Shown: positions 24,493 through 32,755 of the stretch, piece by piece
Numbering within the stretch: the first letter of the stretch is position 1
Layout of the letters: every line of letters begins with the position of its first letter
Assembly: GCA_037447605.1 (NCBI GenBank)
Contig: CM074814.1
Coordinates: 372,001 to 436,000, forward strand
Source: Zygnema circumcarinatum SAG 698-1b
Taxonomy: Eukaryota; Plantae; Zygnematophyceae
Length of the DNA stretch: 64,000 nucleotides
Direction: 5' to 3'
Program-made: the position numbers and the translations under genes
The notes under the pieces: model-generated
What the model was told of the DNA's origin: nothing
The model's database searches: none
Seen by the model: only the letters and a program-made list of their open reading frames with translations

Positions 24493-25305
24493 AGCGGCAA
24501 TGCGACCACCATACATAACATGTCCATGGACATGTGTCCATGTCCATGTCCATGTCCATGTCATGTCTATGCTGCTTCCAGAACCCGGCTGCTCTTGAGC
24601 CTGGAAGCAGATTCCAGCCATGCCTTTTCCTTTCGTCCTTTGGTCCTCGTGGTTCCCTATGTTGTTGTTGTTGAACATGCACATTTCATGCTATCGCCAT
24701 CGTGAGACCAATCCCAACTTCCTCTCTACCGTATGCCCAAAGTATTGTCAAAAGGACGATTTGCAATGTGCCCCGATCACACGCTCCCACTCTACAGACA
24801 TGTCCCTATCCTCTACTATCCATGAATGCCGCTTCGCCACGTATAAAAATTCGAGTACGTGGCGCCTTACCATTGGTTTAAACTCGGCGGAAGTTCACAG
24901 CGGAGACCCCGCCCGCCGTCGTCTCTCGGCCACTTCCCGCGCGCCACGTGGCACCTACACCATTTTTTCCGCGGACCTAGGGCTCAGAGTTGAGCTTCTT
25001 CCCTCGCACGTGTGGCCCCAACCTTGCATGTCGCCACGTGTCACTTCCTCCCTCCCTCCCTCGCTCCCCCCCTCCTCCCCGTCCTCTTCGCTGCTCCATC
25101 TTGGCTCTCGGTAGAGAAGGCAACCCTAATTTTCTCGAGATTCTCTAGAAGCCCTAATTTGCTCGTTCGCTCCCTCCCTCCCCCTTCTCTCTCTCTCTCT
25201 CTCTCTCCCCCTCGCCCTCTTTGCCTGTCTCTGTCTCCCTCCTGCCGCTATGGCATAGCAAGCTTCCAGGAGGGGCTAAGCTCGCAGGCTGCGCCTCTCC
25301 CAGCC

Positions 25306-28300
25306 ATGGCTGTCCTTGGAGAGCGCAACGGAGCCATGGCTTCATCTCCTCCTGCGGGAGCTCGTCAGACTGTGGGGCGGTCCCCACTCATAGGCCCTCA
25401 GGGGCCGCCACATGGCCCTAATCATGCAAGGACCTCTCTCTCTTCTAACCCTAATCCTAGTCCTAACCCTAACGCTAACCCTAACCCTAATTCTCACCGC
25501 CATAAACACCCAAATCTTACCCCTCGTTGTAACTCCAACCCTAATTCTGCAGTGCAACAATTGCAAAGTCCCAATTCCCCGCCACTGCCTCCCCTTCCTC
25601 CCCCTCCTGCTCCCTCCCCAAAACTAACATCATCAACAGCCTCCACTCCTGCTGCATCTGCTGGGTACCTCTCTCCCCGAAACCCTAATTCCACCCCCCT
25701 CCCTCCCCCCCACTCCCCCTTCTCTCCCTCTCCCCCTCCCTCTCCCTCTCCCTCCGCCTCCCCCTCCCCTTCCCCCTCCTGCAGCAACAGCATCCATGCC
25801 CTTGCCACAACTCCTCCAACCTCTACCCAAATCCGAAGCCGACCTATTCACAGCAATGGCCATCCCCATCCCCATCCCCATCCCCTTCCCCTTCCCCTTC
25901 CCCTTCTTCCCCCCCATACACATGGCCCCCATGCTCATGCCCACGCCCCCGTTACACATGCCAATGTTCTCCATGCCCATGGCCATGCCCCCCATAGCCC
26001 CCATAGCCATGGATGTGTGAGCGGAGAGCCCCCTGAAGCCGTGGCCCGGTACAGGCTCATTCCTCCTCTGCAGATGAAGTGGCAGGGGCAGCAAGTCATA
26101 GGGCCGGGTCTGCGGAATCTCGGGAACACGTGCTACCTCAGCAGCGTGCTGCAGTGCCTAACTCATACACCTCCCTTCGGAAATTTCTGTCGAAATCAGC
26201 TGCATTCCAAGATATGTAAGTTGCTTCAGCCCTTCCAGACTCTCCCTCTCTCTCATTTTTTCTCATTCTTTCCTTTTTCTTTCACTTTCTTTCTCTTTCT
26301 CTCTCTCTGTTTTGATTTATCGATTGTGTAATGTTCGGTATTGTGATTTGCAGGCACGAAGCTCAACCCTGACAGTCCAGAAAATTGCCCCTTCTGCATC
26401 TTGGAGCTGCGAATCTGGAGGTCTCTGACTTCAAACATCGAGAAAGATGCTCCGCGGCAGATTTATTCGAAGCTAAAATTGATCGCCAAAAATTTCCGAG
26501 CAGGTCGACAGGAAGACGCCCACGAACTTCTCCGCCATGCCATCGAAGCCTGCAACAAGGCCTGCATAGAACTCGAGAAAATCATACTCGGAAAACGATG
26601 TCGACGTAACTGCGGCTGCAATTCCACAGAACCCTCCCTAAACCCACTGCAGGAAAACGGAAACTTCAACACATCTCATCCCAAACCTACCCCCAATCCC
26701 TCCAATTCCCCCATCCCTATCTGCAAACCAGACCAAACCCTAATCTACAACCCACCAGAGTGCGGAATCAAACCCCCCAATGGTCCCCAAATGGGGTGTA
26801 GCTGCGGGAGAGGTCCGGGAGGTAGGAGGGGGGGAGAGAGTGGTCCGGGAGAGGAGCCCCGTACAGTTGTGCAGGAGATATTTGGGGGCACACTCCAAAG
26901 TCAAGTGCAGTGCTTGGCCTGCCTCGCGGAGTCCAACAAGATCGATGCGATGATGGACCTCAGTCTCGACGTGCATCGTCTCTCCTCTTTAAAGGAGGCA
27001 CTCGCACGCTTCACGCAGCCGGAGATGCTGGAGGGAGACAACAAGTACCGCTGCGAGAGGTGAGGGAGGGGAGGGAGGGGGGGAGGGAGGGAGGAAGGGG
27101 GAGGGAGGGAGGGAGGGGAGGGAGGGGAGGGAGGGGAGGGAGGGGAGGGAGGGGAGGGAGGGGAGGAGGAGGAGGGAGGGAGGGAGGGAGGGAGGGAGGG
27201 AGGGAGGGGGGAGGGAGGGAGGAGGGAGGGGAGAGGGAGGGGAGGGAGGGAGGGGGGAGGGAGGGAGGAAGGGGGGGAGGGAGGGAGGGAGGGGAGGGAG
27301 GAGGGAGGGAGGGAGGGGAGGGAGGGGAGGGAGGGGAGGGAGGGGAGGGAGGGGGAGGGAGGGAGGGAGGGAGGGAGGGAGGAGGGGAGGGAGGAGGGAT
27401 GGAGGGAGGCAGAGGGAGGGAGGAGGGGAGGGAGGGGAGGGAGGAGGGAGGGGAGGGAGGGAGGGAGGGGAGGGAGGGAGGGAGGGAGGGAGGGAGGAGG
27501 GGAGGGAGGGAGGGGAGGGAGGGGGAGGGAGGGAGGGAGGGAGGGAGGGGAGGGAGGGGAGGGAGGGGAGGGAGGGGAGGGAGGGGAGGGAGGGGAGGGA
27601 GGGGAGGAGGAGGGAGGGGAGGGAGGGAGGAGGGGAGGGAGGGGAGGGAGGGGGAGGGAGGGAGGGGAGGGAGGGAGGGAGAGGGAGGGAGGGAGGGAGG
27701 GAGGGGAGGGAGGGAGGAGGGGAGGAGGGAGGGAGGGGGGTGGAGGAGGGAGTGAGGGAAAGGGAGAGGGGGAGGGAGGGAGGAGGGAGCGGGGGGAGGG
27801 GAGGGAGGGTTGGAGGGGTGTGGAAGGGGGGAGAGTGGGAGAGAGTGAGTGAGGTGTAGTGGGGGAAAAAAGGGGACATGGAGGGAAAGAGTTTGGAGGG
27901 GGAAGGAGAGAGGGGGGAGCGGGGATGGGAGAGTGGTAGGGGTCTTGGAGGGAGAGAGAGGGGGGGGGAAAGGGGAAGGTGACTCAGGGAAGAGTGGAGG
28001 GGGAAAGATAGTGGTTCATGTGTTCGTTGTTGGACCCTATTGAAGGACTTAATATGTTATTTTTCCGTTCTGTGCAACAGATGTAAACGTCTTTGCAGCG
28101 CTCGCAAAGCAATGTCCATTCAGCAAGCTCCAAATGTACTTGTAATTCAATTTAAAGTAAGTTTATTTTCCCTTCTGATCCCGCTCTTTTACTCTCTCTT
28201 TTCTTTTCACTGTCTCTCCATTCCTTACTGTCTTTTCAAACTGTTTGTTTCCCTTCTCTGCAGTCCGTCCTTTTCGAGAAAAGCTGTGATATGTCTCCCT

Positions 28301-31300
28301 GTACTTCGTTCAGCTCAGTTTTCAGTTTGTTGTTTACTGACAGTTCATTTTGTTGCTTGTCTTTTTTTCTTATTTCAGAGATTTGAGAACATTCTTGGAG
28401 GGAAAATTGATCGACACATTCGGTTTGACACAACTGTTTCACTTGCAGAGCATATGAGTGCCGGATCAAAGGTACATTTCTGAAACAAATAAAATCTAGA
28501 CTTTAATCATGAATTGTATATAATAATATTCCACACATATTGAGGTACTTAAAGTCTCCTTTTCCTTGTTTTTTACGGTAGCTAAAATACACATTTTTCC
28601 CCCTTTTTTTTTGAGGCTGCAGGATCCGAGACCTAAGTATGATTTATATGGAGTTTTAGTACATTCAGGATATTCGCAAGAATCTGGGCATTACTACGCA
28701 TATGTGAAGGTGAGTTGCCCAATTTCCGAGAGAGGGGGAGAGAGGGGGGGGGGGGGGAAGAGGAGAGGCAGAGATACAGAAAGGGGGAGATGGGGAGGGG
28801 AGGGAGGTGGGGGGGGGGGGGGGGGAAGGGAGGAGGGGACGAGAGTGAGATAGATAGAGAGAGGGAGAGAGTCAGGGAGAGATGAGATATGGAATTTGTC
28901 TTCTCTATTTGCTACTGACATCATTCTTTCTCTCTCGTTTCTCCTCCCCCCCTCTCTCGCCCCCTCTCTCTCTCTCTTACTTTCTCTCCCTCTCTCTCAG
29001 GACTCGTCTGGAATGTGGTGGTGCTGCGACGATGCGAGTGTCTCCCAAGTATCTCTTGAGACAGTTTTGAGCGAAAAAGCATATATGCTTTTTTACTGCC
29101 GAGATTCCCCTCGACCCCAAATCATAACTTCCCAAATCACATCTTCTTCACAGCATCCCGATGCGCATATTCATTACCGAGTGAAGCATTCTGCCGCAAG
29201 TCTCTCTCCCTCTCACCCTCTACCTCTCCCTGTTCCTCTCCCTCCCTCCCTCCCTCCCTCTCTCCCTCCCATGAAGAGACCGCTCAGCTCAGCTGCATCG
29301 AACGAGGCAGGAACAGGAGTTTCCAGAAAGGTGGAAAATGGGATTGTGGTAGGAGCAGTGGGTTCTAAGCTAGAAAACGGAAATTGGTTGGCAGTCAACG
29401 GACATGGAAACCCTAAAAATTGTGGGCAAGCAGGAAAGGCAGGAGTGAAATTTGTTTTGGTGAAAGATAGGGCGCGAATTATTGGGCCGAAACCCCCTAC
29501 TAAGGAGGATGAAGGGAGGCAGAGAGTGGTGGAGGGAGGGAGGGAGAAGAAGGATGCGGGAGAGGGAGCTGAGGGAGAGAGGGGGGCGGAAGGGGAGGGA
29601 GAGAAGGCGGGAACAGGGAGGGATGTGGGTGCTGCTACTAGTGCTACTTCTGGGAAGGAGGAGATTTCTGCTAAGAGTGGGAGCTGCATAGTAAATTCAG
29701 TAGGGGAGTCATGTGTGGGAGAGGTGAGTGAGTTGGGTGAGAAGAGAGATCCTGCTGAAGGAGCGGGAGAGAGAGAGAGTGTTAGAGACAGTAGGAAGGA
29801 AGGAGAAGAGGCAGATGCAACAGCAGCAGTAGCAGGAACAGAAGCAGAAGCAGCAGCAGGTAGAGGAGAGGGGGGAGAGGGAGGAGGTAATGGAGGTGGG
29901 GGAGAGAGAGACGAAAGAGCTGGGGAAAGTAGAGGAGAGGGAGGGAGAGGGGGGGAAGGAGAGGGAGGAGGTAGTGAAGTAGTTGCACCGGGAGTGGGAG
30001 ACTCTCGAGAAAGGGCCTCTGTGCCTTTAGAAGAGCAAATTGATGCTGCTAAAACCACAGGGGAGGAAGCGGTTCTATGTGGAAATTTGACTGGAAATCG
30101 AACCGCACAGAACGGGGGAGAAAAACCTTCAAATGATTGCCGAGACTTTGAAGTTCAGAATACGACCAATGACAACACGGCTCAGTCTAGTAAACCGTCT
30201 CAACAAGTTGCTGATTTCCATGCGGAAAATGGTGCTATGTTAGAAAATAGGGAGAAGCCCAGTTCGGTAGACCGGCAGCAGGAAACCCCAATCCCTGCTA
30301 CATGTGCAGAATCCGCAAAATCCGTAATAACTGATACTGCAATGCATGGAGACTCGCCTTCAGTTACCGCTCCCACTCTCCCTCCTCCCCCTCAACTACC
30401 CCCCTCTCAACCCTCTCTCCCGCATGCAGAGGAATCCGTACCGGTTGCTGTGTCCGTCCCAATTCCAGTTTCAGTCTCAGTTTCTGTTCCAGTTTCAGTT
30501 GAGTCCCATTCACAGAACAACAGAATGCGGTCGCCTTCTTCCCCACATTCTCCCATCCCTTCTAGTCTTCACATGTCGACTCAGTTCAGTTCTCCTGTAA
30601 AATCTGCAACAGAAACGGTATCGACGCATGTAGACGAACCCCTTGAACAGAGAGCAGAAAAAAAGCCGAAACTGACAGGTGATTTTGAAGGGCAAGCAGA
30701 GCTACTTGACGGCTTCAAAAAAAGGTGATTTTTCTGCCTCAATTTAAGCCCAGAAACCCTAAATGGTCAAAATTCCACATTAGAACAATCGTTTGGAGTT
30801 GTGCAGTGGCAGTTGCAGTTGCTTGGTCCTTTCTGTCGCTGTCTCAGTTTCAGTTTTCACGAGGTTCTATGTGCTTTGTGGATTCCGCAGAGTATGTGAG
30901 GAGGCGAGAGAGTTCCTTTTGGAGTGTGGGTGGAGCGACGAAGTGAGGAAACGTGTGAGAGCGGTGAAGAGGAGGAGGAGGGAGGAGAAGGGAGAGCCTG
31001 CGGAAGGAGAGAGAAGGTGAGTGCTTTCAGGGAGAAACAACATCTCTCTTTCTCTCGCCGTCTCCCACTCCCTCTTCAATCCTAAAAACCTAAAAAGTCC
31101 CCCTCCCCCTCCCCCTCCCCCTCCCCCTTCCCCCATATCTATCATGCAGAATGAACTCTAAAAACTTTTAAAACCCTAAAAGCAAGGAAGCTAAGTTTTC
31201 TGTTTTCTTTCATGTTGTTCTTTGCAGAGAAATGTTTTTAGAGGAGGTACGGAGGACGGAGCGAGGGCACATCCGTACGGCCGTTCCGCAGAAAATCAAG

Positions 31301-31372
31301 GAACGTCTTTATCGGGAGCTGAATGATTTTTTTTCCACAAAGGGGAATTTTGGAGCCTCTCTGAAGCGCTGA
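25306..31372 (+). CDS. UBP25: Ubiquitin-specific protease (peptidase C19; UBP25/USP36-42-like) with C-terminal ENY2/Sus1-like domain
   Basis: Cys box GLRNLGNTCYLSSVLQCL; GRQEDAHE; zinc motifs (CLAC; YRCERC); His box VHSGYSQESGHYYAYVK...WWCCDD. Exons about 25306-26215, 26354-27059, 28081-28156, 28380-28471, 28623-28709, 29001-30724, 30891-31016, 31228-31372. Symbol assigned from recalled similarity. Confidence 0.9.
27061..27840. repeat. Long intronic (GGGA/GGA)n polypurine tract
   Basis: About 780 bp almost entirely G and A in USP intron 2. Confidence 0.9.
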
Positions 31373-32755
31373 TAAATAAATCCTCTGTACGGATTTCAGG
31401 TACGGAGATCGATTTGTATTCCCAACAAACCCTAAATTTTCTTGGAACTCTGAACCTCCTTAAAGTCATAAAAAAGTGTACGGAAACTGACTTAACCACA
31501 AAGTGAATGTTTGAGTCAGCATAAGGATAACCCCAAATATTAGAAAATATTAACATTATCAAGGGCAAAAACTAGGTTACTTTATGCGACCTGATTTCTT
31601 CTCTGTTTTCGCACTTGCAGGTGAATGAGGGCAGAAAGAAGAATTTTCTTCACCCTTATATTTTGACTTGAGAACTAACACCGCAGATTTGATGAGCTTC
31701 CATGTAGTAAACGAACCATTCCGTTCCGTTTTCCGTTTCTGTTTGTCACGTCACATATAACTGCAGTTGAGAGGTGTAGTTCGGAGGCTGGAGTTCATTG
31801 GTGAGCAGTTACAGGGGTACTTTCTTACACATTTTTTCTTTCTTTTTTTTTTCTTAAGCAATGAGAGAGAAATGCACAACCTGATAGAAAAAGTGGCTAA
31901 GCCGTTACCCCCCCTTCCTCTGTTTTTTTTTTTCTTCCCTTTTTTGGACAGAGAGTAGGCTGAAGTAGATGAAGTAAGCATTACGGAAAATCTGACGTTT
32001 GGTAGCGCTGGGATCTATCCTTCACATGTCATTTAGTTCAAAAAAATATGTCGCACGACGATGAGCATTGACGCAAGGCACCTCTGCTTGTCAGACTGCT
32101 TGCAAGACGAAGAAAGAAAGAGAGAGAGAGAAAAAAAAGGGAGAAATTGCACTATCATTTGTGACGAGATACATGTCTTTGTGGTTTGAAGATAGTTCTC
32201 TCTTCCACTCCCTTTCCACCCCCCTCCCCCTCCCCTTCCCCCTCCTTCCTTCTCTCTCTTCTGTCCTTTTTTCTCTCCCTCTCCCCCCCCCCTCTGTCTC
32301 CCTCGGCCTAACTCTCTCCCTCTCCCTCCCTCTCCTTTTGTCTCTCTTTCACCTTTGAACGAGCTCCAATCAGAAGCCTGAAACATACTGCAACATTCCA
32401 CAGACCAACTCGCACCATCCTTTCAATCACTCAAACGAGTGACTTATTTAAAGAAAGAAAGAATATTCTTACATTAATTAAATAAATAAATTGATTGAAA
32501 CATGCTGTTCCCCTGTCTATTTGTTACTCTCTCCCGTCGCAACTACCTTCAAAAAGAATAAAAAAATGTCTAGAGTCCTCTATCCCCATAAATTGCTAAG
32601 AAATTATAAAAGATTCGCTTATGTCTAAATTTACTGTACCTCCAAAGCTTTCCTACTCTATAATAATGTAGCGATTACAATACACGCTTCTCATAAATCA
32701 CTTCCGATATCTTCCAATTCTAATCCTGACCTAAATTTTAACCCTCAAGTTAACC

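Follow-up and report, generated by a model that had tools for sequence, protein, structure and literature searches.

A gene in the genome of Zygnema circumcarinatum SAG 698-1b encodes a ubiquitin-specific protease (USP), of the UBP25 type, whose last ~95 residues are homologous to ENY2/Sus1, with helices 2–5 and the Gly-Trp hinge clear and helix 1 doubtful. It lies within a stretch of 64,000 nucleotides (the window; GenBank assembly GCA_037447605.1, contig CM074814.1, positions 372,001 to 436,000 of the forward strand), and all positions given below are those of the window. ENY2/Sus1 is normally a free adaptor through which histone H2B deubiquitinases (the SAGA deubiquitination module) and the TREX-2 export complex are assembled, and it is a subunit of both. 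With a probability of about 0.75, the gene is the algal orthologue of UBP25, a plant ubiquitin-specific protease of the USP36/42 type; this is a joint figure covering the UBP25 identity, the ENY2-homologous tail, an ancient fusion of the two parts and a role for the tail as a helix-gripping tether. The fusion is not peculiar to Zygnema: it is the inherited, ancestral architecture of the streptophyte UBP25 family, and the tail is filed as an ENY2-like domain of this family, not as an ENY2 orthologue.

The two small terminal exons are joined by splicing to the long exon that ends the USP catalytic domain. Contigs from four public runs, belonging to three studies, were mapped on 25600–31550. Although their records do not state so, these runs are RNA, as contigs that skip GT..AG introns can derive from nothing else. 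Both tail joints were present in all four runs, as 30722(+2)/30889(+2) and 31014(+2)/31226(+2). These are the 30724/30891 and 31016/31228 junctions that had been predicted in an initial annotation of the DNA letters, and its further claim, that the last exons are spliced to the USP transcript, was borne out by the contig joints into exon 29001–30724. Single contigs span 29276–30722, 30889–31014 and 31226–31401 before crossing another intron in the 3′ untranslated region (UTR), and a separate downstream gene for the tail exons was ruled out by the spliced contigs. GT..AG joints were also found in contigs at 26215/26354, 28156/28379 and 28471/28623, and a separate contig set covers the USP exons (25916–29199). 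Seven public runs contained about two-thirds of the sampled words of 28.5–31.5 kb, which is roughly the exon share there. In the resulting gene model (Table 1), the putative start codon at 25306 was placed at the first in-frame ATG of open reading frame (ORF) 25012–26331, and the 27059/28081 joint was deduced from 81 contig letters between 27054 and 28379.

Table 1 Coordinates of the UBP25-type gene and its parts in the window.
Feature	Position	Strand	Description
UBP25-type deubiquitinase gene, coding region	25306..31372	+	~1288 codons, eight coding exons
Coding exons	25306-26215, 26354-27059, 28081-28156, 28379-28471, 28623-28709, 29001-30724, 30891-31016, 31228-31372	+	Spliced contigs with GT..AG joints, plus splice-site and frame reading
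USP (peptidase C19) catalytic domain	26090..29102	+	Exons 1-6; Pfam UCH PF00443 matches
Low-complexity linker	29103..30689	+	Pro, Gly/Glu and Ser rich; within exon 6
ENY2-like domain, start	30690..30724	+	..GQAELLDGFKK plus the first two bases of a split Arg codon
Tail intron 1	30725..30890	+	Phase 2; GT..AG joint in four runs; codon split 13 upstream of the hinge Gly (C-G-W)
Tail exon A	30891..31016	+	Helix 2, Gly-Trp hinge, helix 3, basic loop (VCEEAREFLLECGWSDEVRKRVRAVKRRRREEKG...)
Tail intron 2	31017..31227	+	Phase 2; GT..AG joint in four runs; loop before helix 4
Tail exon B	31228..31372	+	Helices 4 and 5 (...HIRTAVPQKIKERLYRELNDFF...), TGA stop 31370-31372

Searches with the tail were run exon by exon or on orthologues. 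Translation of 30892–31015 on the forward strand gave VCEEAREFLLECGWSDEVRKRVRAVKRRRREEKGEPAEGER and that of 31229–31372 gave EMFLEEVRRTERGHIRTAVPQKIKERLYRELNDFFSTKGNFGASLKR followed by the stop, confirming the peptides originally quoted for the last exons. The sole Pfam match of exon A was EnY2 (PF10163; E 0.0037, 18 bits, positions 22–44 of a profile of 83), under the curated cut-off of 27 bits, and exon B alone gave no Pfam match. A hidden Markov model (HMM) of the UBP25 tail, that is, a local profile of orthologous tails, matched exon A with 33.7 bits (E 2e-10, HMM 18–51) and exon B with 17.3 bits (E 3e-5, HMM 68–93), in the correct order after exon A. When the profile of alignment A1, which includes the window exons, was compared with all PDB sequences, human ENY2 (4dhx_B) came first (E 3.8e-6, 30 bits, ENY2 residues 27–98), and Sus1 and fly ENY2b occupied three of the four places after it. 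Together, the EnY2 match of exon A, the UBP25-tail profile and the ranking of ENY2 in PDB support the ENY2/Sus1-like domain that had been proposed for these exons, and its assignment as ENY2-like is well supported. Phmmer searches of PDB with exon A alone were not significant, with human ENY2 4dhx_B among the weak matches (E 0.2), and with exon B alone returned nothing relevant. A word-indexed protein search with the A1 profile returned UBP25 fragments only and no free ENY2 at library-wide E-values.

The residues known to matter in Sus1 were also examined. Its Gly-Trp hinge is required for both Sgf11 and Sac3 binding, and mutation of Gly37/Trp38 abolishes both (PMC2823527). The hinge is present in the window (ECGWSDEV), and among 22 aligned UBP25 tails the Gly is kept in all but two, as is the Trp. 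Helices 3 and 4 are connected by a loop that is K/R rich across the UBP25 family and, in the window, strongly basic (KRRRREEKG). At the end of exon 6, where the domain starts, the sequence was compared visually with alignment A1 and with the HMM consensus. It equates to the conserved LExxK of UBP25 tails and corresponds to the end of helix 1 and the start of helix 2 of ENY2; this piece alone gave no significant profile match and was misplaced in the alignment by MAFFT. Likenesses to ENY2/Sus1 comprise the helix order, the length of ~85–95 residues, the Gly-Trp hinge between helices 2 and 3, V-P-x-x-x-K before helix 5, a predicted articulated hairpin and a first intron matching that of SUS1. 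Unlike ENY2/Sus1, which is a free protein of ~100 residues, the UBP25 tail forms the C-terminus of a USP enzyme of ~1300 (alga) or ~600–800 (land plants) residues, and it is attached to the USP in all orthologues too. It also differs in that helix 1 and its E-x-G hinge are unrecognisable and in that its scores lie around or below the family cut-off.

The catalytic part was identified from both profiles and motifs. Pfam UCH (PF00443) matched three exon ORFs (E 4e-9, 3.5e-7 and 8e-4), and the Cys box GLRNLGNTCYLSS (NLGNTCYLSS, near 26100–26140), the His box YGVLVHSGYSQESGHYYAYVK (GHYYAYVK, located in exon 5) and the Asp block (CCDDASVS) of the USP domain are all readable in the exons. The closing USP block, DSSGMWWCCDDASVS...AYMLFYCR (WWCCDDASVS...AYMLFYCR), stands at the start of exon 6 (29001–30724), which is one open frame. 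When the USP core exon was used as the query in an exhaustive HMMER search, UBP25 and USP36-type proteins were returned; this and the UCH matches upheld the USP36/42/UBP25-type deubiquitinase put forward in the initial annotation. Plant relatives from this search were 570–820 residues long and 53–64% identical over the core exon, and those named UBP25 by their sources include Selaginella, Citrus, Phoenix and Acorus. Plant UBP25 (Arabidopsis subfamily 12; USP36/42 in KEGG-style naming) gave the best full-length core matches, shares the tail domain and both tail introns, and is the same family. The algal protein differs in being about twice as long, in having a tail nearer to the ENY2 consensus (ECGW versus SCGW in land plants), and in its low-complexity N-terminus, USP-domain insert and ~530-residue linker. 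The N-terminal low-complexity region of the algal protein amounts to ~260–270 residues (NPNP and His-Pro repeats, 25306–26080) and the insert is Pro/Gly-rich and ~85 residues long (26600–26860); the 570–820-residue land-plant orthologues have neither.

Nothing was found by the Pfam scan past the end of the USP domain in the linker, and a word-indexed protein search with residues 30–110 and 130–610 of the 610-residue exon-6 ORF returned no matches. The linker could not be aligned with the linkers of orthologues, save for a short KRK-type basic patch common to them just before the tail. A long linker between the USP and the ENY2-like tail, as first described, is thus present and is unconserved and of low complexity.

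We then considered the occurrence of this architecture beyond Zygnema. UBP25 relatives were found in Spirogloea, Chlorokybus, Riccia, Sphagnum, Selaginella, Diphasiastrum, Pteridium, Phoenix, Acorus, Citrus, Camellia, Rumex and Phlomoides, and the tail occurs in Chlorokybus, Spirogloea, a liverwort, a moss, lycophytes, a fern, a monocot and eudicots. Pfam EnY2 was located at the extreme C-terminus in 11 of the 14 UBP25-family proteins scanned, spanning profile positions ~14–83, with matches beginning at positions 7–27. The curated cut-off was reached by three of these (P0012 from Spirogloea, 28.4 bits; P0021 from Diphasiastrum, 27.3 bits; P0014, 27.0 bits), and eight further orthologous tails scored 13.7–25.8 bits. 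Angiosperm tails scored 14–21 bits versus 26–28 bits for Chlorokybus, Spirogloea and a lycophyte, so the early guess that land-plant UBP25 carries a more eroded version of the domain proved right. EnY2 was found in none of five outgroup proteins (a slime-mould USP, a chytrid ‘USP36’, a MYND-type UBP and two plant USP-domain proteins, from Artemisia and Persea). Animal USP36/USP42 and the fungal and amoebozoan USP36-type enzymes have the closest catalytic domains outside plants; they differ from UBP25 in that, among the best 150 representatives, neither the chytrid ‘USP36’ nor the slime-mould protein, nor any of the bird and rodent matches, gave evidence of an EnY2-like tail.

One zygnematophyte UBP25-like model, P0008 from Closterium sp. 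(738 amino acids), has a Pro-rich, low-complexity end right after the USP and is without the ENY2-like tail; a truncated gene model is more likely here than a true loss.

Conservation was also apparent in the introns of the tail. For this comparison, the Selaginella, Riccia and Citrus UBP25 proteins were mapped onto their own genomic loci. Intron 1 occupies the identical codon and phase in all three genes, and a phase-2 intron before helix 4 was found at the equivalent place in each. The exons of yeast SUS1 measure 71, 140 and 77 nt (PMC3201862) and the hinge Gly of Sus1 is residue 37 (PMC2823527). With a first exon of 71 nt, SUS1 intron 1 therefore falls in codon 24, in phase 2 and 13 codons before Gly37, and tail intron 1 matches it in both codon position and phase. 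Tail intron 2 is not at the position of SUS1 intron 2. The shared intron is modest evidence; it fits better if the tail descends from an ENY2 gene that already carried introns than if it arose by convergence. As UBP25 orthologues share this tail and its two phase-2 introns all the way from Chlorokybus to flowering plants, the ENY2-type module was joined to the deubiquitinase at or before the origin of streptophytes, and has been kept on it since then while the linker evolved freely.

AlphaFold models were made of two orthologous tails, those of Spirogloea and Citrus. Four helices were predicted in both (predicted local distance difference test (pLDDT) 86 and predicted template-modelling score (pTM) 0.65 for Citrus; pLDDT 83 for Spirogloea), helix 1 being fused to helix 2 as one continuous first helix. 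In Foldseek searches of PDB, ENY2/Sus1 made up the top 24 of 24 rows for the Citrus model (TM up to 0.62/0.69, probability up to 0.96, E ~0.2) and 13 of 22 rows for the Spirogloea model. VIA-align placed the Spirogloea model on ENY2 (4dhx_B) with Z 7.1 and a root-mean-square deviation of 5.3 Å over 86 residues, on ENY2B (9jua_C) with Z 6.4 (2.9 Å, 76 residues) and on Sus1 (3fwb_C) with Z 6.0 (4.7 Å, 83 residues). A look-alike search of the ESM Atlas with the Spirogloea tail gave no usable match. The predicted structure is consistent with ENY2 and specific in its ranking, and is not decisive alone.

Several points weigh against an ENY2-homologous tail on a single USP protein. The tail of the window was scored only exon by exon, exon A falling below the cut-off and exon B matching the UBP25-tail profile alone. 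The intron match is limited to one yeast intron, the fold-search E-values are 0.2 or worse, and in the exhaustive VIA-align list ENY2 ties with generic helical proteins, coiled coils and designed bundles. In addition, the low-complexity interval 29199–29276 was bridged by no contig among the pieces listed, which were the longest ones. This interval is inside the single open exon 29001–30724, which has the last USP block at its start and the donor feeding the tail at its end, and we accept continuity from the USP to the tail because the exon frame is open and the orthologues carry both parts in one protein. If the likeness to ENY2 were due to chance, or to convergence of a generic helical tail, then such fold-search values and ties, as well as the lack of significance in the single-exon PDB searches, could be expected of a domain that is short and all-helical. 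This is very improbable, since EnY2 recurs, correctly positioned, in 11 of the 14 family members, three of them at the curated cut-off, ENY2 was first in the profile search (E 4e-6), ENY2/Sus1 filled the top 24 Foldseek rows for Citrus, and the tail shares with ENY2/Sus1 both the hinge motif and the position and phase of an intron.

What the tail may do can be approached from the parts it has kept. Sus1 helices 2–5 wrap residues 8–30 of Sgf11, while helix 1 does not touch Sgf11 and contributes to Sac3 binding (PMC2823527). UBP25 tails keep helices 2–5, the Gly-Trp hinge and the V-P-x-x-x-K motif, and helix 1 and its hinge are the parts that cannot be recognised. Because these elements are kept, and because the linker is unconserved with no obvious cis-binding helix, we infer that the helix gripped by the tail belongs to another protein. 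By analogy with ENY2/Sus1, it would form an articulated helical hairpin around the hydrophobic stripe of a partner's long alpha-helix and would thereby tether a catalytically unselective USP domain to a nuclear complex. The flexible linker, several hundred residues long, would give the enzyme access to substrates in the vicinity of its anchor. Alternatively, an ENY2-derived tail could act without an outside partner, by binding UBP25 in cis or a second UBP25 molecule, or by nuclear targeting via its basic loop. The K/R-rich loop between helices 3 and 4 and the drift of angiosperm tails from the EnY2 profile would suit this explanation, which we nevertheless find improbable: a conserved linker helix that the tail could grip in cis was looked for across orthologues and was not found, with only the basic KRK patch recurring, and the fact that neither the hydrophobic pattern nor the hinge has been lost between Chlorokybus and flowering plants fits a conserved function in binding.

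For a tail that grips an outside helix, the short Sgf11 type is somewhat more plausible than the Sac3 CID type, because only helices 2–5, which grip Sgf11, are well kept. It is a tentative and rather doubtful extension of the same analogy that UBP25 may be a chromatin or nuclear-pore deubiquitinase with its own ENY2, the tail sitting in the ENY2/Sus1 slot on SGF11 or SAC3. Docking on the SGF11 N-terminal helix, a partner suggested in the initial annotation alongside SAC3, would bring in the nucleosome-binding zinc finger of SGF11 and create a second, ENY2-independent module for H2B deubiquitination. Animal USP36 and USP42 and yeast Ubp10 have been reported as H2B deubiquitinases. The SAGA module (Ubp8/USP22, Sgf11/ATXN7L3, Sus1/ENY2 and, in addition, Sgf73) likewise combines a USP enzyme with an ENY2-type hairpin. 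There, however, the hairpin is a separate subunit that packs on the Ubp8 ZnF-UBP domain alongside the helix of Sgf11, whereas UBP25 lacks a ZnF-UBP for Sgf11 and Sus1 to pack against and has its hairpin covalently attached via a long flexible linker. The parts of Sus1 that grip Sgf11, namely helices 2–5 and the Gly-Trp hinge, with helix 1 dispensable (PMC2823527), are those conserved in UBP25 tails. Against this, ENY2, UBP22 and TONNEAU1A/B were the only proteins obtained when Arabidopsis SGF11 was isolated by tandem-affinity purification, and the removal of ubiquitin from H2B is already strongly impaired when UBP22 alone is lost (PMC6128693). The absence of UBP25 from this purification argues against a stable SGF11–UBP25 complex in Arabidopsis, and docking on SGF11 appears rather unlikely.

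Docking of the tail in the Sus1/ENY2 site on a SAC3/GANP-type helix would instead bring the deubiquitinase to TREX-2 at the nuclear pore and thus to the machinery for mRNA export. GANP-bound ENY2 and Sac3-bound Sus1 are among the best structure and sequence matches. A 2018 paper, going by its title as cited in PMC8944911, reportedly places free Arabidopsis ENY2 in the SAGA deubiquitination module and outside TREX-2, where the slot would then be available to another occupant. We consider docking on SAC3 unlikely, as much of the Sac3 contact is made by helix 1 and its hinge (PMC2823527), the least recognisable part of UBP25 tails: the Pfam matches start only at profile positions 7–27, and AlphaFold gives one continuous first helix.

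Other features of the gene were noted outside its two conserved domains. The intron between exons 2 and 3 contains ~1 kb of nearly pure GGGA/GGGAGG repeats on the coding strand (27060–28000); it interrupts the USP domain, is strongly G-quadruplex-prone and is spliced across by transcript contigs. At ~31400 (CAG/GTACGG) the contigs depart from the genome and continue with unmatched letters, which points to a further intron in the 3′ UTR. Lying just past the stop codon (31370–31372), this intron could expose the message to nonsense-mediated decay. Seven telobox-like AAACCCTAA motifs (24278, on the other strand, and 25680, 26735, 29408, 30754, 31171 and 31427) are spread over the promoter region, the coding exons, both tail introns and the 3′ UTR. 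Three ACGTG (G-box-like) cores, CCACGTGGC, GCACGTGTG and CCACGTGTC, occur in ~100 bases (24940–25045) just upstream of the 5′ leader.

A 2024 review of plant UBPs gives UBP25 neither an extra domain nor a function (PMC11236618), and a full-text literature search found no description of UBP25 or USP36 with an ENY2-like domain. The tail domain is easy to overlook because UCH is the only entry for the Selaginella, Riccia and Citrus orthologues in precomputed Pfam lists, and domain databases may already display the architecture for the few members at the Pfam cut-off. The UBP25 family presents a deubiquitinase that covalently carries an ENY2-type adaptor, a design conserved from basal streptophyte algae to crops. 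The tail provides a concrete, testable handle on UBP25, namely which helix it grips. Were it to occupy the slot on SGF11 or SAC3, this would constitute a second, ENY2-independent deubiquitination module conserved throughout the streptophytes.

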